Assembly: GCF_000143415.4 (NCBI RefSeq)
Contig: NW_003314326.1
Coordinates: 248,001 to 312,000, forward strand
Reading direction: 5' to 3'
From: Selaginella moellendorffii
Lineage: Eukaryota > Plantae > Lycopodiophyta
Length of the DNA stretch: 64,000 nucleotides
In this document: positions 18,101 to 58,199 of the stretch, piece after piece
Numbering within the stretch: the stretch's first letter is position 1
Layout: the number at the start of each line of letters is the position of its first letter
Program-made: the position numbers and the translations under genes
Notes under the pieces: model-generated
The model's database searches: none
What the model was told of the DNA's origin: nothing
Seen by the model: only the letters and a program-made list of their open reading frames with translations

Positions 18101-18239
18101 CAACACAGATAAACTCATGCCACTCTCTATCAAACCAAACTCAAAACTAATCCAATATTAAGTTATTCAAGGAATAATAGCAAAGTTCCTTGGAAAAGAA
18201 TAAAGTATTATAACCCAAGCTTTCCAATAGTAAGTTTGA

Positions 18240-22428: not shown

Positions 22429-22486
<58 letters not shown>

Positions 22487-22577
22487 TCGGGACCGAGACC
22501 GAGACCGAGGCCGAGGCCGAGGCCAAGTCCGGGTCCGAGTCCAAGTCCGAGTCCGAGTCCGAGTCCGAGTCCGAGTC
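21950..22577 (+). repeat. CpG-rich tandem array inside the 5' LTR (GGAGTCCGAGAT 12-mers, GAGACC and CCGAGT hexamers), ~630 bp
   Basis: Direct reading. Confidence 0.95.
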
Positions 22578-25500: not shown

Positions 25501-27869
25501 TTGCTAGCAACTGTGATGCCATGGAGAGTCTAAAATATGGAATTGTCCATGTTAGACTATATGACAACTATAAAGCTTGTGGAAAAAAAGGCCTTAGCAA
25601 GCTAAGGGACAGAGTTTTTTCAAGGTTCCCAAAGACGATTCTAGGTAGTTTAGTACCTAGAAAGGCCAAGTGTAAATGGTTCATGGAACGCGCGAAATCA
25701 GAGTGGCGCAGCAGAAGCGTGATCTTGAAGCTTGCCATAAGGCAAGGCTATCAAAGTTAGAGAAGTAGTTCCCGAGTGTTCAAAGAGAGGGCTTTGAACG
25801 AAAGTCGATGGTCAAGGACTTTCACACTTATGCAGGAACCATATTACAGTGGTCGGAGGACTTGCCAAGTGAGATTGGCAAGTCGGGGGAACAAATACCC
25901 TAGTTAAAGGTGATAACTTCAAAAAGGGTGGGCCGTAGGGCCAAATATGGAGGAGTCCATGCATGATCACAGACTTGTCAAGTGAGAGGACTTGGCAGTG
26001 TGGACGAACTAGGTTCCTAAGCTGTGATCTGTAGCGCGCTTTAAATATAAGTTGGTGCACCGGCGTGGGGAGTCACGCCAAGTATCCGGTGTGATGCCGT
26101 CCGTAGATGCATATACAGAGGTTGGGTTCGAGTCCCGACCCTCTAGTGCTTAGGTTCGAGTCCCAAATCACTAGGGCATGGTGATGGTTTGGAATATGAG
26201 GACACTCATTTTTCGGTGGTCATGGACTCTCAGTGAGGAGATTGGTTTGGGCACACCGCTAAGCGAGGGATGCCTCGGAGTCGTGATGCACGGTTAGATT
26301 GCTTAGAGTGAAAGCTCGGCATATCTAACTTGAACACTTTGGTGCAAAGGGCACCAAGGACGTGGTGAATGAGATGGGGACACCCAGTCTCAGTTGCTAT
26401 GGATCCTTGGCCGGAAGGGTTGGCTTGGGCACACCGCTAAGTGTGGTGGATGCCCCTGGGGTCATAGTGAACAACATGGAGGGGTCTAGAAGACTTAGTT
26501 CCTATGGGTAGACCTATTAAGGGGTCAAGATGAGATCACCAGGTGATCTTGTGGTTAATCAAGGACATGGTCTTTGTTTGGGTTAAAGAATATGATTCCT
26601 TATTCAAAGTGTTGATTTGAACTATTGATAATGGTGTGGCTTGGTCAAGGTGACCAAGTGGGAAGAACACCTAAGGGAAATGAGCTATGTTAATGCTGTG
26701 GCATAGTAAATCCGAGGAAGGTAGTCTTTATAAAAGATCCAAGAAAGGATCTCAAAAGTTGGGCCGTGGATAGAGCCCACAACAGAAAATGTTAAAGAGA
26801 CGTACTAGGGGTGAACACCCTCTAGACTTAGCAAAGCAAAGTGTTTGCTATGGAACTGAAAGGAAACCTCAAAAATGGAGGTAGCGATCCTATATTGTTG
26901 GGTGCAACAATCAAGGATAGGAGCAAAAGACTAGTGGCTGAGAAAAGAGCCATGGGAATCTTGGGAAAGAATTCAAATGGCAAAGTTAGGCCGAGAACAC
27001 TAATGTGTTGGGTGCTAACGGATTGTGGGAAAGGCAAAATTTCCCTAAAGGTGGATTCCCAACCGCTCCAATTTGGCGAAGTGGATGCTCCAAAGGGGGG
27101 AGCGGTAAGGTAGCCAAATAATAGGGCTGTGTGCAACCCTAGCACCAATTATGATAACTGAAACTTAGTGTCAAAGGTGGCACAATATCGGAGAAAGGAT
27201 GATGGTATCCTCAAATAAAGAACTTTCTAGGATAGGGAAGTGGAGTTGCACCATGTGCAACGTAAGGTGTCAGAGACACCTAGGAAATTGACTCTGAGAA
27301 GTCAAAATTAAAAGTTCCAAAGTGCAAGGTTATGTCAATAGAATCTGAGACTACTCGAGAATAAGTAGTGGAATTAAGTTAGAGAGGGAGTCTCTAACAG
27401 GTTTAGCGAGAACTGAACCAATAAAAGGGAGCAAACCACCCTAGGTGGTCGAATGAGTCTTTATATTGGAGAGACTGTGCTCCTTAGAGGATGGACAAGG
27501 CATGGTGCGCCTTTGGTGTCAAACCATAGACAAATATTGGCTGGGTGCCAAGGATGGAACTGGTAATACATGTGGGTGTTACTTTATAAAAAGGGTTTAC
27601 CATTCGATGAGGACATCAAACTTCGTCTATGGGTGGTGGAGTTGTGAGACACAAAATCCCTAGGCCCCAAAGTGGAGCCGAAAGGGTGCCACGTGGTAAT
27701 GGCCGAAGCAAAAGCCAAACGAGCGTAACACGTTTGGACTAAAAGGCTCCGACTTGAGAGCGGGAGTGGAACTCCCAACGGAGTGCTCAAAGAACGAGCA
27801 TGAAGCGAGCAATAAGCGAGGCTCCAAAAAGGGGACCCAAAAGGACCAACATATGACACGTGGAAGTGT

Positions 27870-28153
27870 CCGAGATGGACCCGAAGTGGAGTCCGAGATA
27901 GACCCGAAGTGGAGTCCGAGGTGGAGTCCGAGATGGAGTCCGAGATGGAGTCCGAAATGGAGTCCGAGGTGGACCGAGACGGAGTCCGAGATGGAGTCCG
28001 AGGTGGACCGAGACGGAGTCCGAGGTCGAGACCGAGACCGAGACCGAGATCGGGACCGAGACCGAGACCGAGGCCGAGGCCGAGGCCAAGTCCGGGTCCG
28101 AGTCCGAGTCCGAGTCCAAGTCCAAGTCCGAGTCCGAGTCCAAGTCCGAGTCT
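27870..28153 (+). repeat. Same tandem array inside the 3' LTR, only ~285 bp
   Basis: Direct reading. Confidence 0.95.
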
Positions 28154-29976
28154 GAGAGGGTGAAAGCCCAAAGCATTCATCTCCCAGACCCTGGGGGGTT
28201 TGGTGAGCTCCAAAAGTATAGTAAAGGGGAGGACTGCAGTGGAGCCAGTTTGGCCAGGAAAGGCCAGTTTGGCCCAGAGAGGCTGCACCCAGTGTTGGGT
28301 GGTGAGCTGACCACTGGGAAGTCCAAGACTAGAGTGAACATGGACCGACAAGCGGGGTAGCTTGGTGAAGTGTTCAAGAGCCAGCTCTAGTTCCCCCAAG
28401 AGATCATCTGGCCGATGCTCCCAGTCCAAGTGTGGGTGGCACTACCTACTTGGATACCTGGTGTGGCTCAATGGAACATCGCTCTAAGCCCATGGCTAGA
28501 GCACCTAAAGGTGAAAGGCAGGGAGAGTACCCACGAGGCTCGCGTAGGGCCACGGTGTTCCGAAATGTCGTCCCAAATTCCCAGACTGTGGAAAGGAAGA
28601 GGAGTAGTCCTCTGGTGTGGTGACCAAGGACACAGCCATATAGGGAGGAAGTCCTAAAGGACAATGGGACTTAGTGGTCGGGCCCGTGGGCCTTGATCCA
28701 GTGGCAGTGTTGGCGAACACGGCCAAGGACGAAAAGGGACTTAGTGGGGACTGGAACGGAGATATTGGGGAAGGCTAATCCCCATGTCGGTAGGCATCCT
28801 AAGGATGCTAAGGAGTGGATCTGGGATGATCACTCGTGGATGGATGGCTCAGTCTTTGAGTGATGGGACTAGGATGCAGGTGGTGTCAAACCATCGTTGT
28901 GACCAAGGTGAATGGGCATGGCCTTAGCATAACAGGCTGATATGTTGGTGGTACCTTGGGGTGTCAGTTATGGGATCGGACACGTGGAGCACTTGGACCA
29001 AGTGCATGAAGTTGAGTGGCGGGGATGCCATTCTCGGGGCTAGTAAGCCCAAGTCCAAAATAGGACTTACGGAGGTTGTGAGTGAGACTCCTCCAAGTGG
29101 TCAGAGGTGCGGTTAAGTGACTAAAGTAAAATGGAAAATTTAGTCGCTTACAGGCACCAATAGCATAGCCAAATGCATCATAATGCACTTTAAAGGGTTT
29201 ATCAAGATTTGGGATCCTGAGAACGGGAACCATAGTCAAGATCTCTTTCGATTGTACAAAAGCACGTTGACAAGCTAGTGTCCAATGAAACGGTATGCTA
29301 CTCTTTGTTAACTCAGTCAACGGAAGAGCAATTCTTGCAAAATTGTAGACAAACTTGCAATAGTATCCTACTAAACCTAGAAAGGAATGAACATCTGATA
29401 TTGTGGTCGGGACTTTTTAAGACTTCACTGCTTCCACCTTCTTTGGATCCACCTCAATTATGCCACCACCAACTATATGTCTGAGAAAGTTTACACATAA
29501 TTGTCCAAAAGCGCATTTACTTTTCTTAGCATACGGTTATTATTAGCACAACTTTTGAAACACTAACTCCAAGTGTTTTAAATAATTCTCCAACATTTCA
29601 CTGAAGACTAGAACATTGTTAATATATAGGATAACAAATATGTTCAAATAATCTTTGAATATTCTATCCATTATAGTGCTGAATATTACTAAAGCATTGC
29701 ATAACCCAAATGGCATGACAAGGAACTCATAAGATTCGTACCGAGTCTTAAAGGATGTTTTCTTCACATCTTGGTCTACCACCTATATCTGATGATACTC
29801 GGACCTCAAATCAAGTCAAGTAAAATACTTAGCCTTTAAGAGTTGGTTAAACAAGTCATCAATGTGAGGCAAAGGATAACTATTTTTGACTGTGATCTTG
29901 TTGAGTGCCTGATAGTCAATACACATCCTCATAGTTCCATCCTTTTTCATAACAAAAAGGACCTGCACTCTATAAG

Positions 29977-30649: not shown

Positions 30650-33250
30650 ATAAGGTGACTTGCTTGGTCGGATATAACCTTTGTCAAGAAGCTTCGTGAG
30701 TTGCTTCTTGAGTTTAGCCATCTCCTTGATGTTCAAATGATATGGAGCTTTTGTAGGTGGTTTAGAACCTGGAATAACCTCAATATAATGATCAACCTCA
30801 CAGCTAGGAAGTAGCTTTGGTGGCAAATCCTTTGGGAAGATATCCTAATTCCTCGCCAATAACTCCAATATCGTCTTTGGTATAGGATCAACCCCATTGC
30901 CGATTCGAACTAAGTCACCAACACCCTCAGTTTCCATCACTTGAACCCAAAAGGTCTGACATCCCTTCTTAGCTACTTTTTGAGTAACTCTTGTAGTTAG
31001 GAACTTAATATCCAAATTCTTTGAGGAGCACTTTTGCAACTAGAAGGACATATTGGGATATCCTTTTGACTTCAATGTGATACAACTTTGTCTAGCGCCA
31101 TAAATCCCTTTAATATATTTGTTGAAGAAATCCATACCAAACACTATCTGAAAATCTGGTATCTTCAACACTACCAAGTCTGCTCTTTCTTTCCACTTGG
31201 ATATTTTTATTGAAACATCACTCATAAATTTTCTGGCTACTTGCCCACCTTTCGCAAATTGGAAGTGTATGGGCAACATTTGCTCAGCATTCAATCTTAA
31301 CAACTTAACTAAATCTTCAGATATCACGTTGTGCGTAGCTCCTATGTCAATCATCATTCGGATTCGGTGTCTGTGGACAAAGCCTACTAAATACATCAAC
31401 AGATCAATGTTTGCATTGACTGCAAGGAAAGCTTGAGAAAAGCAACAACAGTAACTCACCTCCTCATCCTCATAGTTTGCATTGACCAACTCGTCACCAC
31501 CACCGTCTTCCCTTATGACATTAACATGAAACCTTGTGTTATGCTTGTTGGGACATTCCGAGGACCTATGTCCTGACTCTCCATAATGGAAGCAATGAAC
31601 CACACTACCCGTTCCACTAGGAGCAAGTTTCACACATTGTTGCTATTTATACCCACCAAAAGGAGGAACAAAGGGCTAGGACCAGAAGAAGCTGCTGGTG
31701 GTCTCCAACCACCACATTTGTTAACTATTGCTTGTGGGCCTCCAGGGCGAAACCTTCCTTCCACCTTATGTTTCTAATCACCTTGTTTATTCCCAAAATT
31801 CTTATTCTTGTCCGAGGTACCAGTATACGGTTGTTGATATTATTCTATGAGCGAGTGACTAAAGGCAACTTGCTGCGCTGCCTCCTTACACTCTAGATAT
31901 GTCTTCAGCTTAAATTTCAAAATCTCATTGCAAGAAAGTGAATTTAAACATTAAAGGAAATAACTTCAAGCATTTTCATCACTCATATTTGCAATCATAA
32001 TGCGTTTTTAAGCAAACACATTAACATAATGCATGAGGTCCCCTCACTGCTTTAACCACCACAATTCCGTGTGAAATCTCAAACCAAGATCATCCGGCAA
32101 GTATTCCTTACGGATACAAGACCATATCTTGGTCCAACTTTTAGTTTGCCCTTTTTCAACACACACCTGGTGCCACCAAGTTTTGGCATGATTAGTGAGA
32201 AAGGATTGCACATATGCAACTTTTGTATGATCATCTATGTCTGCTGCTATGAAATAGTTTTCCATATCGTAGACCCAATCTTCCAAAACTTGATAGTCCC
32301 ACATGCCTATGAAATTGGGTGGTTTTGGAGGTTTGAACTTTGAAACTCGTGCAACCGAAGGTGGTTACAAAACTTCATTGTCCTCAGAACTTGAAAAGGA
32401 GTTTGGTTGCTTAAGTTTAGCTAGTTTAGCTGCCTTAGCTTCTTTCTTCTTCTTCTTGTTCTCCTTCTTCAATTTCTGAACTTCCCTTCGCAAATTCTCG
32501 ATCTCAATTTCCTGAGCCGTACGTTGTAGTGCTGTAGCATCTAGCTCTTCCTCATCTGACTCAGCCTTAGCCTCTTCTGCAACATCTCTAGTAGGAGTTT
32601 CCTCCTCTTAATTCACCCATCTAGAGGTTTCAGCATCATCAGCAAAGTTCTTTTTCACCATCCTGCTAACTGCATACCTTTATTAGTAACTGAATATGCA
32701 TACAACATTCTTACTGAATGGTGCAATCCAACGAATCCTACACAGGTCACTTTGGATCTACTAGAAAAGTCTCTGCATATGCAACTTGAATAAGAAAATC
32801 CGACAAAAGTTGGATAGGAATCGCTGAGACAATTCCTTTAATACCAAATGTAGCACATATGAATTTGAAGTCGAACTCCAAGCCTATTGTGCTACAAAAT
32901 GAGGGTCCGGTACAATCCCATGAGCACTAGCTCCCCATATCCAACACCTACACGCAAAATGGTGTTAAATGAAGTCTAGCACAATTTTGGCATACCGGTA
33001 GCCTAACACGAGGAGAAGGGTACCCCACTGACTAGAACAGCATGGAGTTTGGGCTTAGACCCAAGCCGGACGTAAAACAAAGAGCGACACAACCCAGCGG
33101 GAGCTAAATTAATATCTTAAATGGTCAAACATGCATTCAAACCACTATCTCTACTATACATTTGGAACCCCCATATCCCCCCCCCCCCAACCTTGAGGAA
33201 CACACGCTTTGGGATTTCACCCCAAGCATCCCTTAGTACCAAGAGTTAGT

Positions 33251-35019
33251 TGTAAGTGACTAATTTTTTCATTCTAATTTAATCACTTAACCATACTTCC
33301 AACCACTTTAAGGAGTCTCATTCACAATCTCCATAAGTCCAATTCAAGATTTGGGGCTTGCTTGCCCTGAGATTGGCATCCATGCCACTCAACCTTTACA
33401 CTTGGTCCAAGTGCTCCATGTGTCCGATCCCATGATCGACACCACAAAATACCACCAACATATCAGCCCGTTACGTTAAGCCATGCCCATTCACCTTGGT
33501 CACATCGGTGGTTCAACACCACTTGCATTGCAATACCGTCTCTCAAAAACTGGGCCATCCGTCCATGAGTGGTCATCCCATATCCATTCCTTAGCATCCC
33601 TAGGATGCCCACAGACATGGGGAATAGCCTTCCCCAATATCTCCTTTCCAGTCCTCACCAAGTCCCTTTTTTTCCATGGCCGTGCTTGCCAACACTGCCA
33701 CTGGATCAAGGCCCACAGGCCCGACCACTAAGTCCCATGGTCCTCTGAGACTTCCTCACCGTGTGACTATGTCCTTGGTCACCACACCAAAGGGTTACTC
33801 CTCTTCCTTTCCACAGTCTGGGACTTTGGGATAACATTTTGGAACACCGTGGCCTACATGGGCCTTATGGGTACTCTCCCTGCCTTCCACCTTTGAGTGC
33901 TCTAACCATGGGCCTAGAGTGAGGTTCCGTTGAACCACGATTGGTATCCAAGTAGGTAGTGCCACCCACACTTGGAACCATACCCAGTGTTGGGTGATGA
34001 GCTGACCACTGGGAAGTCCAAGACTAGAGTGAATACAAACCAACAAACGGGGTAGCTTGGTGAAGTGTTCAAGAGCCGACTCTAGTTCCCCTGGGAGATC
34101 GAATGGTCGATGCTCCTAGTCCAAGTGTGGGTGGACTTGGACTGTTTGTATTAGTATTCAGACTCGGACTTGGACTCGGACTCGGTCTCGGTCTCGGTCC
34201 CAGTCTCAAACTCGGACTTGGTCTCAGTCTTGGTCTCGGTCTCAGTCTCGGTCTCGGTCCCAGTTCCATCTTGGACTCCATCTCGGGTCCATCTCTGACT
34301 CCATCTCGGACTCCATCTTGGGTCCATCTCGGGTCCATCTTGGACTCCATCTTGGGTCCATCTCGGACTTCATCTCGGGTCCATCTCGGACTCCACCTCG
34401 GACTCCGTCTCGGGTCCATCTCGGGTCCATCTCGGACTCCATCTCAGACTCCATCTCGGGTCCATCTCGGACTCCATCTTGGGTCCATCTCGGATCCATC
34501 TCGGACTCCATCTTGGGTCCATCTTAGACTCCCTCTCAGACTCCATCTTGGACTCCATCTTGGACGCCATCTCGGATCCATCTCGGGTCCATCTCGGACT
34601 CAATCTCGGGTCCATCTCGAACTCCATCTCGGACTCCATCTTGGGTCCATCTCAGACTCCATCTCAGACTCCATCTTGGACTCCATCTTGGATGCCATCT
34701 CGGATCCATCTCGGGTCCATCTTGGACTCAATCTCGAGTCCATCTTGAACTCCATCTCGAACTCCATCTTAGACTCCATCTCGGGTCCATCTTGGACTTT
34801 ATCTCGGACTCCATCTTGGGTCCATCTCTGACTCCATCTCATTGCTCGCTTCATGCTTGTTCCTCGAGCACTTCGTTGGGAGTTCCACTCTCGCTCTCGA
34901 CCTTTTTAAGTCAGAGCTTTTAGTCCAAACATGTTACGCTCGTTTGGCTTTCGTTTCGGCCACTACCACGTGGCACCCTTTCAGCTCCACTTTGGGGCCT
35001 AGGGATTTTGTGTCTCACA
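33251..35019 (-). mobile_element. Solo LTR of the array-bearing family, with internal inversion and deletion; TSD TTAGT
   Basis: Reverse-complement match to the LTRs of 21715-29152. TTAGT at 33246-33250 and 35020-35024. Array at ~34160-34840. Inserted in the chromovirus 5' LTR. Confidence 0.92.
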
Positions 35020-36514
35020 TTAGTCTCTGGGACAAACTCAAAACTTGCTAAATATGGAATGTCCCTAGATTGCAAATTTGGATACGAGATAAACACCATT
35101 GTGTTTAGGACAATCTTTACATTTTGTAGATAAGCCAAATTAAGCAAATCTAAACACTTTCCATAATTAGCATTTGGGACCGAAATGAGACTAATATAAA
35201 GGGCATGATAGTGAGGGTATACACGGTAAGCTATCATCTAGCGATATTGAGGGACTAGTCTCAATACGCGAGGGTTTTTGTCACTAGCCAATGCAAGACA
35301 TAACAAGACGGGAACTCCTTACCAGGCTAAATATGATTAGCTAATAACACATAAGAATTCCGTCTTTATGCTTGTCCGGTCTAAGTACACTTGAAATGCC
35401 CAGTTAACTCCACTAGCACAAGAGGGGTTACCAAAGGGATCCAATTGTACTGACCCCCTACCGTCATGGCAGTAAAGAAAGAGTGTTTGTAAGGACTAGC
35501 CAACAAGTATTTTTCGATACCTGAAGTCACATTCGTGACAGGAGTTGAGGTACCCATACCAAAACCATTATGCTATAATGTTTCCTCTTGGGGTCCCAAA
35601 TTAAAGATGCATTTAAAACTTAAAATTTAAAGGGTTATATGAATAAGTTTTGTTATATCAAGGGATGTTAAAAACTTGGAAGCTTTATGTGCTTTGCTGC
35701 TTATGTTTATAGGGAATGTAACCCAACCTTACTATAGTCTATCCTCGAGATGGGGATTGGGAGAGAGTATGAGAATCTGTGAAGTGATGGCTAACACTTC
35801 ATTGTTTGTGTAATGAGTAATTGAACTTACATAGAATCAAGTCAAAGTTCAAACAATATATATAAACTTTAGTAAAGGAACTTAGTTGAAACAAAGGCAA
35901 AAGTGGTCAAATAAATAAAGTAAACTAGCAAATTAGAAAAAAAAAAATTATAACTTACACTAATAAGAAATATGGTGAAGAAAAGAAACCCAAAGAAATG
36001 AAGTAGCACAATGTTAGTGTTAAAATACAAGATTTTTCCTGAAAAATTCAACATGGTTCACATGCCATTACAAATCTAAAGATTGAATATTAAAGAATAT
36101 TCTAAGAATCTTTGTCAAAAGAACTTAAGATTTAGAGATAAGAATGAACAAGAAAGCAAGCATTGACATAAAGAAACAAAGCAAAAACTCAAAAGTATAG
36201 GAAAAACCTTGAGAAAATAATCCAAAATCTTGACAGATCAAAATGAAATCATGCCCAAGGAAGAAAACATGATTTTTGATTACGTTGCTATGTGCTGCAC
36301 CAGCTCTATTCTTATGCTTCTCGACTCTCTCCTTAAACTGATGCTACCACCTAACCTAGGCAATAACAGCAACGTAAGTTGGATTTGGATTTTCTGGAGC
36401 TTCTGCTCTTATTGCAGTTGCAACTAGGCTGAAGAACAAAACGAACAAAGAGAAACAAATCCATCAACGTCGAGTGCTGTTGTTGCAAAGGACGGCCAAG
36501 GGAGAGATGTATTC

Positions 36515-38434
36515 TTAATTCGTTCTCATGCATTCCCCAACGGCTGCCCCATGAGCTCGGCAACAGTAAAAGACCGGCTCATCAGTGCGAGACCATCTTC
36601 GACATGGCCGGGAAATGCCGTATTCAACCACCACACCAGGACATTTCTTGATCGCTTTCTTTTCCAGACTCCTGGCTGGTCTCAGGTTTAGCAACTCATC
36701 GAGTGCTAACAAACACATGTGAACGTCCCCCAGCTTTTTGAACATAAGAGGTTGACTGGTGACTGCATCCCAATTTACGGACAAATCCTCATTATCTGAA
36801 TCCTCCTCCTCAGGTTTATCTGAATCCTCCTCTTGTGGATCTGCCTGTGCATTGATGTAGTTGACAACGTTTCCCTCAATCTCTCCCAAATCATCCTGCG
36901 TCACACTCTCAGGCATCAGGTAAACAAACTGATGCTCTACACTTAAATTCCTCGACAGCCATCTTGGCAGCACCTGCTCCTGCCAAAAACCGTGTGATCT
37001 CTTCCTTCGTTTTTTCTTCCATTTTGAAACCCTGATTTGCACTGCCTTGATCGTCAGCACAGAACCCTCTAGCCTCAGGTAGATGACATCCAAGGCTTTC
37101 TCGTTGAACGCCTCAGGTCCAACCAGCACACCATCAGCGAGCTCCTCTGTCGACAAGTCCCTGAGAAATTTTGCTTCACGTCCATGCTTGTATGTCTTGT
37201 AGTGCTTGAACTCTAACCCTTCCCACAGCTTCCCTTGATACCTCATCACTGAAACAATCAAACCTTCCACATTCCAGCCGACGCGAGGCGGATTCCTGTT
37301 CGTTCCTGTGCAATCCATTCTCACAGCACCTACCCAACGTTGAATGTCTTCATACTGGAGAGTGCTCTTCAAATTCTTGTTCTGTTCCATGATGTAGAAC
37401 TCCGCTCTAGACCGTAAGTATGGGCACAGGAGCCTGAACCTGGAACCGTCCTTGTAAAAACACGTGAGATCCACTGGCCCCTGAAGGAGAGCACTTAGCT
37501 CACCCCTTGTAACCAAGTCCAAGGCAGCTGCGAGCTGCTCCTTAGTGGTCTGCAATGCAATGAACTTATCAAACAACTTTCTTGTGTAAGTTTCTTCGAT
37601 CTTCTCCATGAACTTGTTACTGTTTCCCTTCACTTCCTCGAAGAACCTCAAAAGCTGAGGTATTCCACCGGTTAAACGTTCAAGCGCTTTAAGTTCAGTC
37701 TTGTCAAGACTCGACTGCGCAATCCACGTTTCCAGCTCACTGCTGTTGTAAGGTCCATCAAAGTCGAAACTCGGTAAAGGCTTGTCGGTGACGGTGTTGA
37801 TCCTGCGCTCCCTACTGTTGGTCGAAGACAGCTTAACAAGGATATGGCGAAACGACACTGCCTCCTTCAAAGACGACATTAAGCTTGGAAAATCCTCAAA
37901 CCTATCCCAGTCGTCTACCACGAACAGCAATGGATCGTTTATTCGGCGCCGACACCAGCCAACCAGCTCACCCAGCGTGGTCATCCCAGCCACACTTTCG
38001 TCACCTCGCGTGGCCACTAACAACGCATGTTGAAGAACGTCAGCCGGAGATTCAACGAAACGACGGGTAGAAATGTAGACGACTGGTTTTTTCTGCACCC
38101 CGAGCATGTTACCGGTAATGGAGCTCATGACGGTGGTTTTTCCGGTTCCTTTAGCTCCCTGAACCTGCAACTGAGCACCCCTGCGCAGCCTCGAAATCCT
38201 GTCCAGTAAATCCTTGGCTTTGGCCCTGCCTATGTACCTGTATTCTTCGGACTCGTACTCACTGCTAAAGCTGCGGGTGGGTTGTATGAGAGTTTGGAAC
38301 TTGGTCGTATCCCACAAGAAATCATCCGGCATGTTGCCATAGACGGCCTCAAGCTCGTCGAGAAGCCCCAAGGCCTCCTCAATCAAGGAAATACCTGGGT
38401 CGCCACGCTGCCGCTTCCTAGATGCGTCTCCCAT
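36515..38434 (-). CDS. P-loop NTPase + restriction-endonuclease-fold protein with C-terminal Cys/His cluster (Crinkler/RHS 'CR' effector-like), ~639 aa, intronless
   Basis: Uninterrupted ORF with first ATG at 38434. Walker A GAKGTGKT, Walker B LLFVVDD, GxP helix TGGIPQLL, REase-like GWNVE...PEAFNEKALDVI...AVQIRVS, basic NLS-like RKRQR and KKKRRKR, and terminal C-x12-C-x12-CC-x2-H. Confidence 0.8.
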   Translation of the reverse strand: MGDASRKRQRGDPGISLIEEALGLLDELEAVYGNMPDDFLWDTTKFQTLIQPTRSFSSEYESEEYRYIGRAKAKDLLDRISRLRRGAQLQVQGAKGTGKTTVMSSITGNMLGVQKKPVVYISTRRFVESPADVLQHALLVATRGDESVAGMTTLGELVGWCRRRINDPLLFVVDDWDRFEDFPSLMSSLKEAVSFRHILVKLSSTNSRERRINTVTDKPLPSFDFDGPYNSSELETWIAQSSLDKTELKALERLTGGIPQLLRFFEEVKGNSNKFMEKIEETYTRKLFDKFIALQTTKEQLAAALDLVTRGELSALLQGPVDLTCFYKDGSRFRLLCPYLRSRAEFYIMEQNKNLKSTLQYEDIQRWVGAVRMDCTGTNRNPPRVGWNVEGLIVSVMRYQGKLWEGLEFKHYKTYKHGREAKFLRDLSTEELADGVLVGPEAFNEKALDVIYLRLEGSVLTIKAVQIRVSKWKKKRRKRSHGFWQEQVLPRWLSRNLSVEHQFVYLMPESVTQDDLGEIEGNVVNYINAQADPQEEDSDKPEEEDSDNEDLSVNWDAVTSQPLMFKKLGDVHMCLLALDELLNLRPARSLEKKAIKKCPGVVVEYGISRPCRRWSRTDEPVFYCCRAHGAAVGECMRTN

Positions 38435-39782
38435 GAAAACCAAGCCGCAAGACCTAAGAGGATGATTCTTGGTTTTTATCAATTTCTGCACGGCATAGTC
38501 CCTGAGAAACGCAACATACCCATGTCCTCAAATATACGCAGAGATAATTTGGAAACACCTCCAATCCGGTTGATCAACTGCAACCTAATTTGATGTTCGC
38601 GCCCACATCACCATTTTAGATTTTGCAAAGAGGTGCTACTTTTCCCGATAGTAACAAGCCTGCTCAATTGCGACTTCGATGCGAGACATAGTCTGCTTCC
38701 CCCTGCAATATTTTCCTGTCAATCTCGTCCAAAACGCCTTACTCATCGTCAGCAGTTAGTGATGAAGAGCGAGCTGAGCTTTTCCTTGCTTCAGCTTCAG
38801 CCTGAGCATAAACTCAATTAAGATAGAACAAAGAAAAGAGCAAGTACCTTGTCTTTGGCATGCCAATGCTGGGAAAAGGGATCTCGCAAGGTCTGCATCA
38901 GAGCTGGTAGCCAGACTAGCAAAGCTCATGGCTGCAAACAAATACTAAGTCAGAGACCAAGTGATTACTCTCACCCACATGACAGGGTGTGTTGGCATCA
39001 CTCTCACAACTCACGTCTCCTCAGCCCATTCCTAAAATAAAATAAGTTTCCTAAGAGGATCCTAAGAGGATCTGACATGACATGCAGTCTAAAGCTACGG
39101 CTGCAGCAATCGAGACGAGCAAATGATTTGGCTTAAGATCCTTGACCACCTTGACAGCAACATCGCTACTCTACCGGACACGGGTGTTGCAAGAAAAAAA
39201 CGATTGGAGACGTCTTCATGCCTCGTTTCTCAGGATCTCTAGCTACAAGCACGCTTTGAGCTAGAGGACATGGTTTGCTGATTGGGAGCGCTATTCATGC
39301 ACGTCCGCTGCTAGAAAACAGAACGCATGCCGCGAGCCCTCTGCCATGGACCCTGCAACGATATAATCTAAAGCACGTCTGAGGAAGCTCCCTATTTTAA
39401 GCAAAAACACGTCTCCTCTCAAAATAAGTGAAAAAACGAGCAGACAAAATGGACCTACTACTGAGTTGAACAGGACATCCTTGATCACCTGCAAGCCATC
39501 ACTTTGATTTTGAGACAAAGTGTATATCTATCTTAGTTACTATCGTTTGAAAATATTAGAACAATAAAACAAAATCAAACAAGTGCTTTGAATCTGAAAT
39601 GTGACCTTTCTGCATATATGCTGCCATCATGGACATGCACAAAACAACTTCCTGGGATTGGGATCAATCTAAATGAAGGCTGGAGTAGAGAGTTTTGCAT
39701 CAGCCTATGCTAAGCAATCACATTTTATAAGAATTTTTATTGCATTGGAAACTGTTTGCTAAGCATTCAATTAAGTTTACTG

Positions 39783-42700
39783 TGTTGGGGGAAGGAGGGG
39801 CACCTCCCCCAACGCTCACTCAAACACGAGAAATGTTTCACTACTCTTCGCAAAATACCCCCCTTTGCCCTTATGAGGCAAGGGTTTTATATAAGGAAGA
39901 TAGGGAATATTCTGAGGGCTAAAATATTTCTTCTCTCTCTCTCACTCTCTTGGCCACGCCCTAACATGTGACCACGGTGGATCGCATTGGCTCCAGATGC
40001 ACAAGAACCCTCCGAATAGTGACTGCGGCTATTGATGCTAAGTGCTATGTGAAATAGTAGAAACTCTAAAAAACAAAGTGGAAAAGAAAGAAAAGAGGTA
40101 GGTGTAAAGTTTGGAGACATGGAGGAAAACCCGGTGGGAAACCCTGTAGTCAAATTAGACACTGGAGTTGAAGGAAAGTGTAGAAAAAATGTAAAAAGAG
40201 GAGGAAAATAGAGGAAAAAATAAAATAAAATATGAGTACTCAAAGAACTTAACCCGTACCTGGATTTCAGCTCAGGAAAGTGTAATATGCAAATGCAGCC
40301 TCTTGATGACTTCCAATATGCTCCAAAGATTGGCCGACTTTGAGAAAGAAAGAGAGGTAAAAGAGGGAATGTGTTGCCCAAGGGTGGTAAGTGTGGAAAT
40401 GATGAAAGATGGAGTGATATAGTGGAGTGCTAAGATGGTGGTGGCACTTTGAAAAGGCGGCCATGGATAACTGTTGGCCTGTAGAGTAAGCGCTAACCAC
40501 TTGGAGTAGCTGGTAACCGGTAACCAGTAACTAGTAACCAGTAACCGGGGACTTGTAACTTGCAATCAGTAACCAGTGTCTTTGGCTCCTACTCCTACGC
40601 CTGTTCCAGTATTGATATGACAGAGTGATATGGTAGAGCGATGAGATGGTGGTGGCACTCTGAAAAGGTGACCAGTCTAATGTGTTAGACTGAAGAAGTT
40701 AGCATTTGAAAAGGATGGCATAGTACTAGGTTGCCGGTAAAGAGAGGTGGCATGTGTCCACTGAGTGCTGGAGTAGAAGAAAGTGGCTTTGGCTTCTGTG
40801 GCCTTGCCTAAAGATTCACCTAGGTGCCTTGAGTGAACAAGTTCACCTGGTTGGAAGAAAGTCGCTCCAGAAAAGCTAGTGAGTTGTCGGCAAATGGTCG
40901 TAAGGACATCTCGGACATAGCACGTCCAAATGAGGTGGTGTCTTTTGCTGCTGGTGCATGTATGTGCATCCGTGGTATGGTGTAAATGTGACCTCAAACG
41001 GAGATGTGAATGATGGTGAAAGAATGAAAGATGAAAGATGGGCATCTAGAGATAACTTCGGGCAACATTGCTGGAAGTGATTGGTGATCGAACTATGAGT
41101 CTAGATGATATGGAATGGGTGAGGGGAATGTGTGGGGTGTAGTAATGGTAAGGGAAGGGCCAAAGAACCTGGAACATAGACCGAGCCAAATGAGGAACCT
41201 CCATACAAACGGCAATACAACACCAAATCCAAGGCATGGGCCATGGTTCAATGGGGAAACACCCTCTGAAAGGAAGAAAAGTAGCCATGAAACTAAAGTG
41301 AAAGAAAGGAAAAAAAAAGAAAAAGAAAAAGAAGAGAAGAGGAATGCCTCACCGGATGAAATGTTTGAGATGAGAGTGGTTGTGAGCATGTGAGAGCTCA
41401 CGTCCATTAGAATCAATTAGCACATATGCTCTGCCTCCAATGTGTCGCTGGACAAAGTAGGGGCCAGCGAGGGGAGAATTTCGAAGGTGGTGTAAACTCC
41501 TTGAGTAGAACGAGATCACCATCCTCGAATGGTTTGGCAGACCGTTGGTGATCAATGACTGACTTGATTTTCTACTTGCCTCGAAGGAGATGTTCAGTCA
41601 TGGATCGTCGTTGTTCCTCCAAGGCAAGAACCTCCAAGTCACGTGCATGAAACTTGTCCTCATCGCTAAGCTGCATCACTGCTGCGTATTGAAGTGAAAG
41701 TGAGAGTGATGGCACCTGGATCTCCACTGGAAGTACGGCCTCTGTCCCATAGACAAGGGAGAATGGGGCGCAAAGATGGATGTCTTGAAGGACACCCAAA
41801 AGGCCCACAACACCGTAACCAAGTGTTCGTGCTAACGCCTTGGGTGATCCTCCACAAGCTTTGAGATGACTGTCTTCAATATCTTGTTGCTGGACTTTGC
41901 CTGGCCGTTGCACTCAGGATAATAACTACTGCTCTTCACGTGCTTGACCTGCCGCTGCTGGAGAAGATGCATCACACACTTCCACCGCATGCAAAAAGTT
42001 GGTTGGAACTCTTGGATGGTCACAATCCAAGATAAAGTACGAGGACTGTGAACTGATCGCTGTAAAAGAAAGGTTAGTACAGTAAAACAGACATAGGAAT
42101 GGATACAGGCTCCAGCAAGAAAGTGACAGAATGGCTCCAAGGTATAACCAACAGCCACCACTACTTTTTCTGCATCCGTATACTTCTTTCCAGTCTCCTT
42201 GAACGAATATGAGGCATAATATGTTGCATGTGGTGGCTTGCTAGGCTGTGAACGTTGGCAAAGGCATATTCCAAAAGCCTCTATATCCATCTTGGTGTAA
42301 ATTTCGAAAGGGAGTTGTTGTTCTAGTGGTTGGAGTACCAGAGGCCCCACGGTAGGAAATTTTGAACTCAAAGAGTTATAACTCGCATGCAGCACGTCCG
42401 ATTGGCTTGATTCTTTTTGCCTGTTGTGGGTCTGGATGTAATCCTTTGTCTCCAAAAAACGGCATGACAAAATACGCTTGGAGTCGTTAGCTACTGCGAT
42501 TTGAGTAGGAAGATGTGGGCTGTATGACACCGTAGGTAGTTGCTGAGGAGAATTGAGTTCAGCTGTGTCCTATGAAAGATGGGCCTGGTCTGGAGTGACT
42601 GTGTCATCAAGCTCTATAAGAGAGAGTTGGTCCCATGCAAGAAACGAATCGAGGAGCCCTTCCTCTATCAAGAAACACTCCGAAAAGCTGGATATGGGAG

Positions 42701-45700
42701 CCTATACTCTATAAGCCCTGCCATCAAATAAAGAGGGCGTGTCTAGAGGCTCGGCCTTACTCTCAAATAAAGAGAGTGAAGCTGAGAGATGTCTTGGGCT
42801 ACCTGACTCACCTCCAACCATGTCAATTGCATTGCATGAGAAAGCACCTGTCATATAGACGATTGACACTGCCAACTCAGGAAAAACCTCTGTGAGGTCA
42901 GGAGGAAAGTATGGTGTGGAGGCCATCTTAGTCCGAGCTTGCTGGGCTTGTTGAGAAAGAGCTCTGCCATGGTTATTGAGAAAGGTGGCACTGTGGGTTC
43001 GATCACTAATTTCCATCTTGCCTTATGCGCTGTCAATGGTGCAATGGGCTATGACTTGTTATGAACGGCCAAGGATGATAGAGTCCTTCAAAGAGGATGT
43101 TCCAAGATGTTGGTAGTCAACCACGAGGAAATTGACCTCAGAAATAACACCCTGCACAGAGACTTTGACACCACAGCAAATGCCTACCGGAGGAACGGTG
43201 TGGTTGGCAAAGGTTTTGAGCATGATGGAGGAGCTCTCAGTGATCTGTAGCTGTGCTAAAAGGGCAGCCTCAAGAGAGATAATGTTGCTTCCAGAACCGG
43301 AGTCAACCAAAGCATCCATCTTACAAGAGGAAGTACCAATTTGCACCGGGACAAAGAATGGACCAAGATCTCCACCATATCTTGTCATGTCGACAATGTG
43401 CACCTCTTGAGGAGTCCCCTTGAGAGTGCTCTCTAGTGTTCCTGACCATGCACTCCTCTAAACACTGGCCGAATCCAGGGAGACAACATGTCTCGGAGTG
43501 AAAAGGTGACGGGAGTGTCAACCAGTTGTTGAAGAACCAGCTCCAAAACAGGAATAGCTGTTGGTGAGATCGCAGGAGGAGAAGAGAGTAGTGACTTGAA
43601 GGGGAGCTTACAAGCCACCCTCTGTATCATTAGATCTGGTGCCAATGAAGGTTCGCTCTCAATTGGTGCCGGGGGATCTAGAGTAGGCTGAGCGGCTACC
43701 TTCTTCTTCGCTTGGGCTCAAGTGGCTGCGGTTTGCTACTATTGCCTATAGAGTTCCTCAGCTACCAAAATTGTGTTGACCAATGAGGCTGGTGCCTTGC
43801 CTTTGCTTGACGAAGGGGCTGCCTCAATCACTTGTCGCTCCAACTGCTCCTGATATGTCTCTGGACCCTGAGACGATGTGGAGTTGTCCGCAAAGGGACG
43901 TTGTTGGACATATTGAGAAGATGGAGGCCGAAGCTCTAGGTGAAGCTTGAAGCAGCGCTGTGTGTTGTGTGTGTTCGTCTCACAGTGAGTGCACCAACGG
44001 GATTTAAATCTACATTCTCGAGCTGTAGCAGCCTCTTTCCTGGACTCCACTAGCTCCTGGAGCAGTTTGTCATGGTGTGATTACTGTCACCGTGGATCCT
44101 TGGAACCTTGGGGGATAAATGGGGATAAAATAGCCACTAAGGGCTCTCTCATCAAGCAATTACCCCTTTTCCAGTTGGCTTAAGGGGAGAGAGATAAGGT
44201 GCGCTACAGTGGCAAATGAAAATGCCTTACGGTAAGAGCTGAATGTCTTCTTAAGAAGTTTCCGTTGCAAGTTCCCATGCAAACCCGCTGTAAATGCCGT
44301 AATCCTCTGTTGCTTATCTTGGACCAGTCTGCGATCCCAACATTACTTCCAGTAAGCTTGAAACCGTGTGATGTAGTCAGAAACAGACTCGTGAGCACCC
44401 TGTAGGAACGAAAAAAGGTCGACAAGTAGCCGATTTGTGGGTTTTTCCTCAACGAAGCGTTCTCTAAAAGAAGCAACTAGTGTCTAGAAGTCTATCCGGT
44501 CCTCTGGGAGGAGAGAATCTACCCAGGTTGCTGCTTTGCCTTCAAGAGACTGCAAGAAGTCGTGGCACATACGATCATCATCGACGATCATGTTTATGGT
44601 GCAGTAGTAATCAAAGTGACTAATGTGCGATGTTGGAGAGACTGTTCCAACACCTGAGAAGGTTGGCAGATCACTCCCCTTCTACAGAACATGGAGCTGA
44701 GGTCGAGCTAAAGGTGGCTGCGCCATAGCTCGTAGATATAAGTTATTGGAATCTGCCGAGGATGAAGAGGACTCGGCCTGAGAAGGTGCAGTGTCATACC
44801 TAAGCTGCCTTTGGATGTTAGAAAGTTTACTCCGTGCCTTAGGGCCTTGAGGTACAGTAAAAGGGTGCCAATTTGTCGCATGTCTAGTTTGTACCGGCAT
44901 CAAATACCCTGAACACTGCAAATGCCCGGTCAAGGCAACTAGGTTGATAGGAGCAAGAAGACTATAGGCTAGTGCTCAAGTTGCTCAAAGTTGCCCAAAA
45001 TGCATGTGATGAAGAGAAATAAGGGCCGAAAGGGAAGTAGATGTAAGCCTCAAGCATGCGTAACCCATAGGGTAACCGCCAGAGTAGCCGCTGGAGTAGC
45101 CACTGGAGTACCCGCTAGAGTGGCCAGTAACCGATAACCCGTAACCAGTAACCGGGGATCTGTAACCTATAACCGGTAACCCCTACTCTCGCTCCTACCC
45201 CTGTGCCTGTTCCAACACCAACTCCTATCCTTGTGCCTGTTCCTACCGTCCCTATTCCTACGCCAACTCTTGTTTCTACTCCTCCTGTTCCTGTTCCTAT
45301 GACTACCTGTTCCTTGAAGATTGCTTCGTTCCCAAGGAACTCCTAATAAAGTTTAGCCCAAAAGAGAAAAATGAGTCCCTTGGTCGCAATTCTTCCCCAT
45401 TTTGACTGTTGGTGGGCTTGTTGGAAAGAGCTCAGCCCCGTCTACCCTCTATCGTAGGAATTTGGGAAAAATCCACCTCAATATTCCCTGAAATCCACGA
45501 AGAGGTAGCCCAAAATGCCAATATTGTGGAAAAACATGTGCATGTCCGTGATGTAGATCAATACTAAGGCGCCATTTGTATTTTTGATAAGCCTAGGACC
45601 AAGAGCACCTTTAGAGACAAACGGCATCCAAAACAAAGCTAGGAGGAGTACAAATTCCTACTCCAAAGATGACCCAATCTAGTCGGGGAAGAAAATCCTT

Positions 45701-46246
45701 TTGCATGCCATCAATTCGCCCAAATCTAGTGCCAAGAATCACCACTACTCGTAGATCTATGCCAGATCTACAAGCCCAAATGCACTACCTTGAGAAATTG
45801 GGCTGAGGAACCAAGCGAGAAAGTGAAAGTGGCTTCATTTGACTGAGCCAAGAAACGTTGTATCTCTTCAAATACTGCACAGTTTGATGAGTGCCATACC
45901 TTGCTAGAAAGAGGAGCTCTAGACCTATCCAATACGCCCAAGATCAAAGAAAACTACCACAAGACGAACAAGGAATTCCTTCCCAAATTCTGCGGCCAAA
46001 AGAAAAAGAGAGAAATGACGCTTCAGAAAGTGCTGCACATCACGCCGAGTTCACCATTTTTTGGGGGAAGGAAGGGCACCTCCCCCAACGCTCGCTCAAA
46101 CACGAAAAATGCTTCACTACTCTTCGCAAAATGCCCCCCCCTTGCCCTTGTGAGGCAAGGGTTTTATACAAGGAAGATGGGGAATATTCTGAGGGCTAGA
46201 ATATTCCGTCTCTCTCTCTCACTCTCTCGGTGGCCACGCCCTAACA
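39783..46246 (-). mobile_element. Non-chromovirus Ty3/gypsy deletion derivative with short (~185 bp) LTRs and tRNA-Trp-like PBS
   Basis: LTRs 39783-39966 and 46059-46246; PBS at 46041-46056. Zinc knuckle CTHCETNTHNTQRC, protease ALVDSGSGSNII, RNase H fragment and Athila/Tat-style integrase end (SSYYPECNGQAKSSNK, PFSLVYGTEAVLPVE, GPY). RT core not seen; no clean TSD. Confidence 0.85.
44082..44208 (+). mobile_element. 5'-truncated LTR of the TRIM family at 29977
   Basis: High identity to 30525-30649, ending ...GCGCTACA. Confidence 0.85.
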
Positions 46247-50500: not shown

Positions 50501-50918
50501 AAAAAGCTGCATGTAGAAGGTTTTCAAACTCTCAAGCAACTAATGGGGGTGTTGGACAGAGACGTGAGGAAGACAATAAAGCATATATAAGTTTTCAACC
50601 TAGGATAGTGGAGGAAGGTTCATCTAGATCTTCTTTATATTATTTCAGCAGTGAGCAAGGTGAAGAAAGGGTTATCTTGGCCTAAGCAGAACTTTGTAGT
50701 AGTGCAACGTGAAGTGGAATTAGATTGAGAATGAGTGCAACTGAGGGCTAGACACAAGTATTCATAGCCCCTTACTTAAGTGTTCTTGGGTTTAAGTAGT
50801 ACTAAATTGGGTGACTTGTTGAAAAGTCCAAATTCAAGAGCTCACAAAGTGGTGAAATTGACAATCAGAAGAACTAGCTTAAGTGTACTATTAAGTGAGG
50901 GGATGCTTCTAAGGTCAT

Positions 50919-51870
50919 TATAAATGACTAAATTTCCCACTCTACTTTAATCATTTAACCACATTTTTGACTATTTAGAGGAGTTTCACTCATAATCTTA
51001 GTCTTCATCCCAACTTGGGGTATTTGCTAGCCTCTATAAGTGATCTCAAAGGTATATCAACTTCACACTTAATCTATATATTCCATAAATCCAATCCTAT
51101 TTCAAATACCCAAAAGTAATATTGATGTACCAACTTCTATGCTAATACCATATTCATTCTCATTGTCTTATTAGTAGTCTAAGATTATCAATGCCATGGT
51201 CATGTCTCTCCAAGACTATAGATTATCTATCTATAAGTGGTCATCCTATGACCACTCATTAGTATCTTTATGATGTCTCAAAATATAAAAGAACTATAAG
51301 TTCATAAATTTGGACTTGAGCCCAATACTATTCAAATTTAAGGACACTTAACCCAAAGTATCTCAAAACCCTTAAACGATTGAAAAAAGGAGGTGCATTT
51401 TTATTTATAGGCCATTTCTTTTTATATTTGAACCCTTATAAGTCATATTTTAAGTCATTCCCTTTGGTTATTTATAAGAACACTATTATATATCCTTTTT
51501 TTCAATCCTCATAAAGTCTTTTTCTATCCATAGTAGTGCTTACTAACACTACCACTAGGACAAAGCCCAAAAGCTTATCCACTAGATCACATTAACCCCT
51601 AGGACTTCCTCATAAGCAAAAGGATCAATCCTTTTTCATTTCACCATTAGGGATTTTAAAATGACATTTCAAAACACCATAGCCTAATGCAAACCTTGTG
51701 GGTACTCTCCCCAACTTCTACCACTAGAGTGCTTTAGCCACATAGCTAAAGCAAGGTTTTGATGAGCCACATAAGTAGGTAGTATTTTCTACACTTGGAT
51801 TGGGAGCATTGACATCTCCAACAAAAATTGAAGGTAGCACTTGAATAATTTATTAAGTCACTCCACTTAT
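50919..51870 (-). mobile_element. Old, partial copy of the array-bearing LTR family, interrupted by a solo LTR of the small TRIM (51295-51476, TSD AGAAC)
   Basis: Colinear but heavily C>T/G>A decayed match to 52739-53530. AGAAC flanks the 182 bp insert. Confidence 0.75.
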
Positions 51871-51929
51871 CTGTCCATGCATTGAAGTTGGTGTAGGCTA
51901 ATTCTCCACTACAGCCACCTTCCTTGAAT

Positions 51930-57950: not shown

Positions 57951-58199
57951 CAATGTAAGTTATAAATTTTCCTTTGCCAATTTACTTTGTCTATCTGACC
58001 ACTTTTGCCTTGGCTTTCGTTAATTTCCCTTACCAAAATTCTTTCTTATCATACCAACTTTACCTTGGTTCTACTTAAGTTCAACTTATTATTGCTAAGT
58101 AATAAAGTGTTAGCCAATTTTTCACAAGTTCTTAAACTCTCTCTTAATCCCCCTTCTCGGGTTAGATTGGATTTAAAGTTCACCTACACTCCCCACAGA

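Follow-up and report, generated by a model that had tools for sequence, protein, structure and literature searches.

The gene and its genomic setting

The locus described here raises the question of what a long, unbroken reading frame is doing among decayed transposons in the genome of the lycophyte Selaginella moellendorffii. Throughout the text, the window refers to the whole stretch of 64,000 nucleotides that was analyzed. On its minus strand, the window translation gives a frame that, counted from a GTG, stays open over 658 codons (36515..38491), whereby the first ATG defines a protein of 639 aa, in agreement with the coordinates proposed in an initial annotation made before this work (Table 1). 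The frame had been described there as the sole long ORF outside repeats in a transposon field of about 48 kb. This holds, since all other ORFs of at least 200 aa between 16 and 64 kb are repeat-derived, being either read-through of a 12-nt minisatellite in a dispersed repeat or an RT-RNaseH fragment of a retroelement. An ORF of 640 codons cannot have arisen by chance at such base composition. The claimed retention of CpG in the ORF was also confirmed, with an observed/expected ratio of 0.75 as against 0.3–0.55 in most neighboring kilobases and 0.0–0.2 in some transposon blocks; the contrast is real and of moderate size, and it suggests that the gene may form an unmethylated island within silenced repeats.

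The gene exists in two genomic copies: the copy in the window (36515..38434, minus strand) and LOC9639826 on scaffold GL377637.1 (locus L005; older gene model P0064), whose proteins are 97% identical. The second copy also holds the ORF open, so that both exceed 630 codons. The two share a unique gene unit consisting of the CDS flanked by about 500 bp on its upstream and about 440 bp on its downstream side, and outside of this unit their transposon content differs. In the window, a degraded retroelement is inserted immediately upstream of the gene unit. PPR and F-box genes are located in the same 64 kb.

Table 1. Features of the locus, with coordinates in the window and the evidence or remarks for each.
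Feature	Residues (aa)	Coordinates	Strand	Basis or remark
Complete single-exon CDS, headless CR-type protein	1-639	36515..38434	-	first ATG at 38434; 639 codons + stop
Unique gene unit		36072..38936	-	CDS with flanks; common to other genomic copy L005
Neighbor, outside gene: degraded LTR-type retroelement		39785..46230		~170-bp direct repeats, 92-94% identical
Neighbor, outside gene: dispersed-repeat copies incl. 12-nt minisatellite element		33246..35515		downstream of gene
N-terminal basic patch, NLS-like	6-11	38402..38419	-	read from sequence
P-loop nucleotide-binding domain	60-225	37760..38257	-	model, motifs, conservation
Walker A	93-100	38135-38158	-	located in translation
Walker B (hhhhDD)	170-175	37910-37927	-	located in translation
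Helical lid then winged helix (helices + beta-hairpin)	226-336	37427..37759	-	model, conservation
Conserved GxP motif TGGIPQLL, in helical lid	255-262	37649-37672	-	located in translation
Long helical linker	337-380	37295..37426	-	AlphaFold model
C-domain, predicted alpha/beta	381-510	36905..37294	-	restriction-endonuclease-like element order; conservation
Acidic linker with internal duplication	511-555	36770..36904	-	low-confidence model region
C-terminal module, conserved C-C-C-H cluster	556-639	36518..36769	-	sequence, model, conservation

A STAND-type core in the N-terminal half

The AlphaFold model of the protein (mean pLDDT 80.6) shows a P-loop domain followed by a helical lid and a winged helix, and the N-terminal half models as a STAND-type NBD-HD1-WHD core. 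Its best Foldseek matches in the PDB were Avs4, NLRC4, CED-4, NRC4 and Roq1, with E-values from 1e-8 to about 1e-6. In Pfam, the closest families remained below their cut-offs (nSTAND_NTPase5 with 24 bits vs. 34, and NACHT with 20.5 vs. 26.7) and NB-ARC did not match the window protein at all; NCBIfam, a PDB sequence search and PADLOC gave weak P-loop matches only. The motifs of this core are nearly invariant across 11 Selaginella paralogues: the Walker A lysine is kept in 10 of them, and D174 of Walker B, G256 and P259 in all. The P-loop, STAND-like character claimed in the initial annotation is thus supported by conserved motifs, model and Foldseek, with Pfam staying sub-threshold. A repeat sensor of the LRR, WD40 or TPR type was found neither in the Pfam scan nor in the AlphaFold model.

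Homology to fungal Crinkler proteins and the missing header

The Crinkler/RHS (CR) assignment of the protein is borne out by alignment of its NTPase, winged helix and C-domain with header-bearing fungal proteins. In a phmmer search against 1.84 billion proteins, it matched the header-bearing Rhizophagus protein P0017 over aa 18–513 (E 6.7e-8), and hhalign of the Selaginella against the fungal family aligned residues 28–510 over 476 columns with a probability of 99.95% and an E-value of 5.4e-38, at an identity between the window protein and the fungal proteins of about 18–23%. Judged by these alignments, the module is homologous over its full length to the post-header part of proteins from Glomeromycotina, Serendipita and Mycena. 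The homologous NTPase, winged helix and C-domain are found in the Glomeromycotina CRNs of Rhizophagus irregularis (P0017 and P0031), and relatives exist in the further genera Diversispora, Gigaspora, Paraglomus, Funneliformis, Serendipita and Mycena. Plant and fungal proteins share their Walker and GxP motifs as well as, in the C-domain, the motifs P..N..D, Q-I-T/S and W. REase and NTPase domains have been reported in Rhizophagus CRNs (PMC6131194). A search with the Rhizophagus module returned Glomeromycotina, Mycena and one further assembly, and no oomycete CRN. A profile search with a 14-sequence alignment in a word-indexed protein database recovered just four proteins already known, the candidates probably having been swamped by P-loop words.

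Plant and fungal proteins differ at both ends. The ubiquitin-like Crinkler header (PF20147), present in many of the fungal proteins, scored above the Pfam gathering threshold in the Rhizophagus and Serendipita relatives, is assigned to further Glomeromycotina genera by precomputed annotation and is carried by 8 of 16 fungal sequences in alignment A4 (Mycena members not shown individually). In comparison, it was absent from the window protein even at E-values up to 10 and from all scanned Selaginella paralogues (P0006, P0007, P0008, P0014, P0020, P0022, P0035, P0045 and P0064), and the 1.4 kb upstream of the gene contained no candidate header ORF, as expected from the earlier remark that an N-terminal header is missing. 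Direct reading of the translation revealed neither a hydrophobic signal-like segment nor an LxLFLAK-type motif at the N-terminus, which consists of the basic patch and then a helix. A 68-residue N-terminal extension in the old gene model P0064 was considered as a possible header and rejected: it is made of small predicted exons, has no header similarity and is omitted from the RefSeq model. At the other end, the Selaginella C-C-C-H cluster, a probable zinc knuckle, is lacking in the aligned fungal proteins; its residues C598, C611, C624 and H628 are kept in all paralogue sequences that cover them, and the cluster is doubled in P0007 and P0028. The acidic linker, with its duplicated stretch at about aa 530–548, is restricted to the closest paralogues of the window protein.

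The C-domain and the question of catalysis

Nearly all motifs listed in the initial annotation were found in the protein, the C-domain signature being P440-x3-N444-x4-D449 (with a second spacer of four residues and not three as noted before) together with Q466-I-x-V-S. The residues conserved across the 11 Selaginella paralogues are E390 (9/11), E420 and D449 (11/11), Q466 (10/11) and I467, K475 and W484 (11/11 each). A second basic patch (aa 471–479) lies inside this domain. The predicted order of elements is a helix (E390), a strand, a strand after D449, a strand ending at Q466-I467, a helix and a strand, which, with the positions of the E, D and Q residues, fits the alpha-beta-beta-beta-alpha-beta core of PD-(D/E)xK enzymes. 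Moreover, approximately half of the best 50 matches of the C-domain in a BFVD structure search were PD-(D/E)xK proteins, the best with an E-value of 9e-4 as the sole one below 0.001.

Searches against solved structures and domain families were less favorable. Foldseek of the C-domain model in the PDB yielded nothing significant, the best match (E 0.03) being to non-nuclease folds; arenavirus and hantavirus endonucleases and R2 element proteins with a restriction-like endonuclease domain were among the weak matches. Pfam assigned no family to the C-domain of the window protein searched alone; in the 16 fungal relatives it recognized P-loop families and the header and nothing over the C-domain, and scanning the winged helix and the C-terminal tail separately returned nothing usable. 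The position of the (D/E)xK lysine, two residues after Q466, is occupied by T, S or R in 11 of 11 Selaginella sequences and never by K, so catalysis is not assured. Overall, of the restriction-endonuclease fold proposed earlier, the element order and the conserved E, D and Q residues stand, while significant PDB matches, Pfam matches and the canonical lysine are absent; a PD-(D/E)xK fold of the C-domain is weakly supported.

An important question is whether the protein cuts DNA at all. A member of the same family with the same architecture, in which nuclease activity was lost or never present, would serve as a switch or scaffold that binds DNA or chromatin in an NTP-dependent manner. The missing lysine, an acidic residue replaced by Q and the want of a significant match to any solved nuclease all speak for such a protein; to bind DNA, the conserved basic loop together with the zinc knuckle would be enough. 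However, D449, Q466 and E390/E420 are kept across paralogues and kingdoms as an active site would be, and K475, situated in the loop following the Q466 strand, is invariant in the Selaginella family. Within the PD-(D/E)xK superfamily, enzymes are known that have Q or E where the canonical residues would be, or whose lysine has moved. In CRNs, moreover, induced cell death was mapped by mutation to the annotated REase domain (PMC5289972). We regard a non-cutting protein as a serious contender that is nevertheless unlikely.

Family, selection and origin of the locus

The Selaginella family comprises at least a dozen loci and is lineage-specific, all paralogues coming from this one species; the earlier attribution to a land plant holds. 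A homologue of 38% identity is carried by run SRR4210093. Members are 22–55% identical and keep their motifs nonetheless; near-identical recent copies are lacking apart from the copy/haplotype pair described above. In a crude neighbor-joining tree, the fungal sequences group together, and the Selaginella paralogues are deep and not clearly monophyletic. One paralogue, P0002, looked like a natural deletion of the C-domain, but its truncated model turned out to be an assembly-gap artefact.

The initial annotation had offered the enzyme of an undescribed mobile element as one reading. The gene would then belong to a still-moving, transposon-derived NTPase and nuclease pair, or be a selfish parasite gene spreading with neighboring transposons. 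Transposons indeed abound around the window copy, the family is multi-copy and one scaffold carries a tandem cluster of its members, CR NTPase + REase pairs have been traced to prokaryotic transposons (PMC5289972), and the behavior of an epigenetic parasite has been ascribed to a headless Crinkler-like gene of animals (PMC12957317). The comparison of loci did not bear this reading out. Between the window and four other loci, similarity was confined to the coding region, with no common flanks or terminal repeats, the one exception being a 71%-identical stretch shared with L003, which lies downstream at about 1 kb from the stop codon. Between 35 and 47.5 kb in the window, no inverted repeats of at least 40 nt were found. 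In the two paralogues whose neighborhoods were examined, P0003 is 300 bp from ordinary genes on either side, and P0007 has genes for GTPase, PARP and terpene synthase around it. The paralogues are also old, and the transposons surrounding the two copies differ, which indicates that they came around the gene and not with it. Overall, a mobile or selfish element is improbable.

Another possibility is a relic drifting toward a pseudogene, still intact through its youth and with no present function. The silenced-looking, CpG-poor repeats around the gene would suit it, as would the fact that the two copies differ at 19 amino acids and that their last few residues are altered through a single indel. 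Furthermore, dN/dS was 0.58–0.74 and not significantly below 1 (P = 0.14); it was computed on the two-copy pair, synonymous sites between paralogues being saturated at their level of protein identity. However, the coding sequences of the two copies are separated by one indel where the rate of the flanks would predict about 30 (Poisson P about 2e-12), approximately 30-fold fewer, and substitutions are 2.5-fold rarer in the CDS than in the flanks (1.9% vs. 4.9%; Fisher P 3e-5). This deficit of indels and substitutions shows that the ORF has been under constraint between the two copies. Together with the full ORF retained in both copies, key motifs that are all intact and match deeply diverged paralogues, and a CpG content above that of the surroundings, it makes a relic very improbable, a shade more so than a mobile element, and the gene is intact and selectively maintained in S. 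moellendorffii. Fungal contamination or mis-assembly, suggested by the root-dwelling fungi that harbor the nearest non-Selaginella relatives, is effectively refuted by the low identity to fungal proteins, the position of family loci in megabase-scale Selaginella scaffolds beside plant genes, the two diverged copies with common plant repeats and the PPR and F-box genes of the window. The locus is a nuclear-genome gene of S. moellendorffii that encodes a headless version of the C-terminal module of CR effectors.

Comparison with known systems

According to PMC5289972, NTPase + HTH + REase is the commonest C-terminal architecture of CRNs, in which toxicity is ascribed to the REase and its regulation to the NTPase. 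Under the classification of Zhang et al. 2016 summarized there, oomycete CRNs of this type have the same three-part architecture as the Selaginella protein, and the same logic of an REase effector under an NTPase regulator acting on nuclear DNA is proposed for them in that text. Neither the phmmer search nor the search with the Rhizophagus module gave a direct sequence match to an oomycete CRN. The oomycete proteins are delivered into a host, whereas the Selaginella protein is endogenous to the plant.

Prokaryotic STAND-nuclease defence proteins (for example Avs4, PDB 8dgf) and the eukaryotic NLR, Apaf-1 and CED-4 proteins share the NBD-HD1-WHD core and the GxP motif, so that the Selaginella protein, too, probably works as a switch whose oligomerisation depends on nucleotide and which is coupled to an effector. 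In contrast to these systems, it has no LRR, TPR or WD40 sensor, and its effector-like domain is C-terminal. The AACRNL family of animals (PMC12957317) is likewise a Crinkler-derived toxin module in a free-living, non-pathogenic eukaryote with a lost or degenerate header. Its toxin domain, however, is an ADP-ribosyltransferase and not an NTPase + REase pair, and it has no sequence relationship to the Selaginella protein.

Proposed function

Taken as a whole, the protein is best explained as a headless, endogenous CR-type NTPase-gated DNA-targeting protein, with a probability of roughly 0.55; its family classification is well supported, and its function is what we infer. From the N- to the C-terminus, it consists of a STAND NTPase core, a long helix, a probable PD-(D/E)xK alpha/beta domain, an acidic linker and a probable CCCH zinc knuckle. 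Because header and signal sequence are absent, the protein presumably stays inside the plant cell that produces it, and the basic patches may allow its entry into the nucleus. Binding or hydrolysis of a nucleotide by the STAND core would then switch the oligomeric state. Through this switch, the C-domain would be licensed for DNA binding and probably for cleavage, with the basic loop and the zinc knuckle assisting. The most plausible role is one in genetic conflict, such as defence, cell death or protection of the genome, and not one in housekeeping. The family is restricted to its lineage, has expanded, evolves fast between the two copies and descends from an effector-type module.

It is plausible that the module was transferred long ago between fungi associated with roots and the lineage of Selaginella, in either direction. 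A more specific scenario connects this with immunity: the module would have passed between a Glomeromycotina- or Sebacinales-like fungus and an ancestor of Selaginella, lost its header, gained the zinc knuckle, spread to a dozen or more loci and now serve as a STAND-gated nuclease arm of immunity or programmed cell death outside the NLRs. We consider this history unlikely.

Implications

Homologues of CR proteins in land plants have been attributed to Zhang et al. 2016 in PMC5289972 and PMC12957317, so their existence as a general fact may already be on record. In RefSeq and UniProt, the Selaginella proteins described here are labeled as uncharacterised. Research on Crinkler effectors treats them as weapons that oomycetes and fungi direct at plants. 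In Selaginella, an NTPase + winged helix + nuclease-like module otherwise known from microbes that colonise plants has been retained by a plant, seemingly for its own use, as an expanded and headerless family under constraint. If the protein were catalytically dead, it would illustrate how an effector module can become a switch that binds DNA. If the plant uses it as a STAND-gated nuclease, plant conflict systems would gain a branch outside the NLRs, along with a possible case of gene transfer between fungus and plant. Should the reading as immunity acquired by fungal transfer be true, the family would provide a counterpart, in a eukaryote, of bacterial Avs-type STAND-nuclease defence, made from a former effector. 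The family offers a sequence-defined case for asking which role such modules play in free-living hosts.

Open reading frame in a transposon field

The left end of the window (1-16000) is ordinary gene-rich DNA with near-normal CpG, and the transposon field sets in abruptly at ~16 kb. On the minus strand, 658 codons starting at GTG are open at 36515-38491, and translation from the first ATG (38434) yields the single-exon, 639-residue protein (36515-38434) of the initial annotation. Its description of this frame as the sole long non-repeat ORF was borne out: the other ORFs of at least 200 residues between 16 and 64 kb are either read-through of a 12-nt minisatellite or a retroelement RT-RNaseH fragment. 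The motifs listed there were found in the translation, except that one spacer reads P-x3-N-x4-D rather than x3. The CpG contrast was likewise reproduced, with an observed/expected ratio of 0.75 in the ORF against mostly 0.3-0.55 nearby and near zero in some blocks.

The minisatellite (17-50 units in every copy) resides in a dispersed repeat of ~1.5-2 kb, and its read-through accounts for the long "ORFs" in these regions. The CpG-poor blocks, most with a TpG/CpA excess and low G+C, are depleted far beyond the other repeats, which points to old elements that have undergone methylation and deamination over a long period. The isolated Pif1 2B-domain piece may come from a Helitron-like element.

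Features surrounding the gene (window coordinates)
Feature	Position	Strand or remark
Class-V aminotransferase-like ORF	2258-3514	-
F-box ORF	7168-8142	-
PPR protein ORF, 701 residues	13401-15506	+
Dispersed repeat, five copies	21700-23800, 27600-29200, 33200-35000, 52700-54500, 61800-62300	both orientations
Ty3-type aspartyl protease fragment, isolated	31040-31633	-
LTR-type retroelement, ~6.4 kb	39785-46230	terminal direct repeats ~170 bp, 92-94% identical
Pif1 2B-domain piece, isolated	60343-60828	-
CpG-poor blocks	16000-19000, 48000-52000, 56000-58000	observed/expected 0.0-0.2

Second copy and selection

The protein is 97% identical to S. moellendorffii LOC9639826, whose gene was located on scaffold GL377637.1 via the older gene model P0064. 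This second copy aligns to window 36072-38936 and, further upstream, to 39249-39779; beyond these stretches the same repeats are differently arranged in the two copies, and the second is flanked by the same minisatellite-bearing repeat. The LTR-type retroelement starts a few bases from the end of the upstream homology and therefore looks, from the alignment, like an insertion specific to the window copy; its coding capacity is broken up, the sole ORF being an RT-RNaseH fragment.

Substitutions between the copies amount to 1.9% in the CDS and to 4.5% and 5.3% in the flanks (Fisher P 3e-5). The CDS carries one indel, at its extreme 3' end, against ~30 expected at the flank rate of 15 events in ~950 bp (P ~2e-12). 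The dN/dS check proposed in the initial annotation, run on the two copies, gave 0.58-0.74 (dN 0.013, dS ~0.02; codon differences: 19 non-synonymous, 9 synonymous; 29 differing nucleotides overall), not significantly below 1. The ORF is therefore held open by selection while its protein sequence evolves fairly fast, and the gene is an intact, constrained plant gene.

STAND core and C-terminal domain

Besides a P-loop domain, the full-length AlphaFold model (mean pLDDT 80.6) contains a helical lid bearing the invariant GxP motif, and a winged helix. Its top PDB matches are STAND proteins (Avs4, NLRC4, CED-4, NRC4 and Roq1; E 1e-8 to ~1e-6), in keeping with the STAND-like motif noted from the sequence; the predicted structure amounts to a STAND core that lacks a repeat sensor.

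Modelled alone (pLDDT 76.7), the C-domain (residues 381-510) runs helix (E390), strand, two short helices, strand, then a strand preceded by D449, a strand ending in Q466-I467, a helix (W484) and a strand. This predicted order fits a restriction-endonuclease core, as had been proposed from the motifs. Against BFVD the best match has E 9e-4, and PD-(D/E)xK proteins account for roughly half of the 50 best: the UL24 family, N-terminal regions of bunyaviral L proteins, exonuclease V, VRR-NUC and PDDEXK-annotated proteins. Against the proposal, the fold search of PDB gave no significant match, and the (D/E)xK lysine is absent from its usual position, although nearby K475 is invariant across the Selaginella family. 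A nuclease fold is likely, and the domain may be catalytic.

A C-C-C-H cluster, probably forming a zinc knuckle, is conserved in the tail. The module is tandemly duplicated in the paralogues P0007 (L004 11600-12230) and P0028, where short introns separate the duplicates from the rest of the protein; the tail thus appears to be a separable module.

Selaginella family and mobility

Scanned exhaustively with phmmer, a set of 1.84 billion representative proteins yielded only 27 matches, most of them S. moellendorffii paralogues at no fewer than 12 loci, some of which form a tandem cluster on a single scaffold; the protein belongs to a Selaginella-specific family. A full-length homologue, 38% identical, in Logan SRR4210093 (L001, 2116 bp) suggests, from its sequence, that one or more other organisms have the family too; an unspliced intron may lie within the start of this homologue. 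The seeming lack of a C-domain in the paralogue P0002 (L003 10001-11769, GL377606.1) is an artefact of an assembly gap (N run), around which the gene model splices.

The initial annotation had also considered the enzyme of an undescribed mobile element, to be checked by counting paralogues and aligning their flanks. Similarity among the paralogue loci is confined to the coding region, except for one stretch, 71% identical, shared by the window and L003 ~1 kb downstream of the stop. No inverted repeats were found bracketing the gene, and the window holds no further copy. Single-exon P0003 has ordinary genes 300 bp away on both sides, and the neighbours of P0007 are GTPase, PARP, acyl carrier protein and terpene synthase genes. 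These results do not support the mobile-element reading; the window gene has no signs of mobility.

Relationship to fungal Crinklers and proposed function

The non-Selaginella phmmer matches come from Rhizophagus, Acaulospora, Serendipita, Mycena, Rhodelphis, a few further assemblies and a cyanobacterial caspase-STAND protein, the last aligning in the P-loop region only. The Rhizophagus irregularis protein P0017 aligns to residues 18-513 of the window protein, its match beginning directly after its own Pfam Crinkler header. This header scores above the Pfam threshold in the Rhizophagus and Serendipita relatives, is annotated in further Glomeromycotina genera and occurs in 8 of the 16 aligned fungal sequences. 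Profile-profile comparison of 11 Selaginella with these 16 sequences (probability 99.95%, E 5.4e-38, 476 columns) spans NTPase, winged helix and C-domain; by sequence comparison, the window protein is homologous to the module that follows the Crinkler header in fungal proteins, and its assignment to the Crinkler/RHS type stands. The protein itself lacks the header, as first noted: none was detected among the Selaginella paralogues scanned against Pfam, nor any header-coding sequence in the 1.4 kb upstream of the window gene. According to two reviews (PMC5289972, PMC12957317), NTPase + HTH + REase is the most frequent C-terminal architecture of CRNs, and land plants have CR homologues.

We infer that the module was transferred long ago between the Selaginella lineage and root-associated fungi, a point that a crude tree did not settle; for an unrelated gene, another transfer from a fungus to Selaginella has been suggested (PMC5982333). 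The window protein would be located in the nucleus and oligomerise in a nucleotide-gated manner, its C-domain would bind or cut DNA, and it may have a role in conflict or defence.
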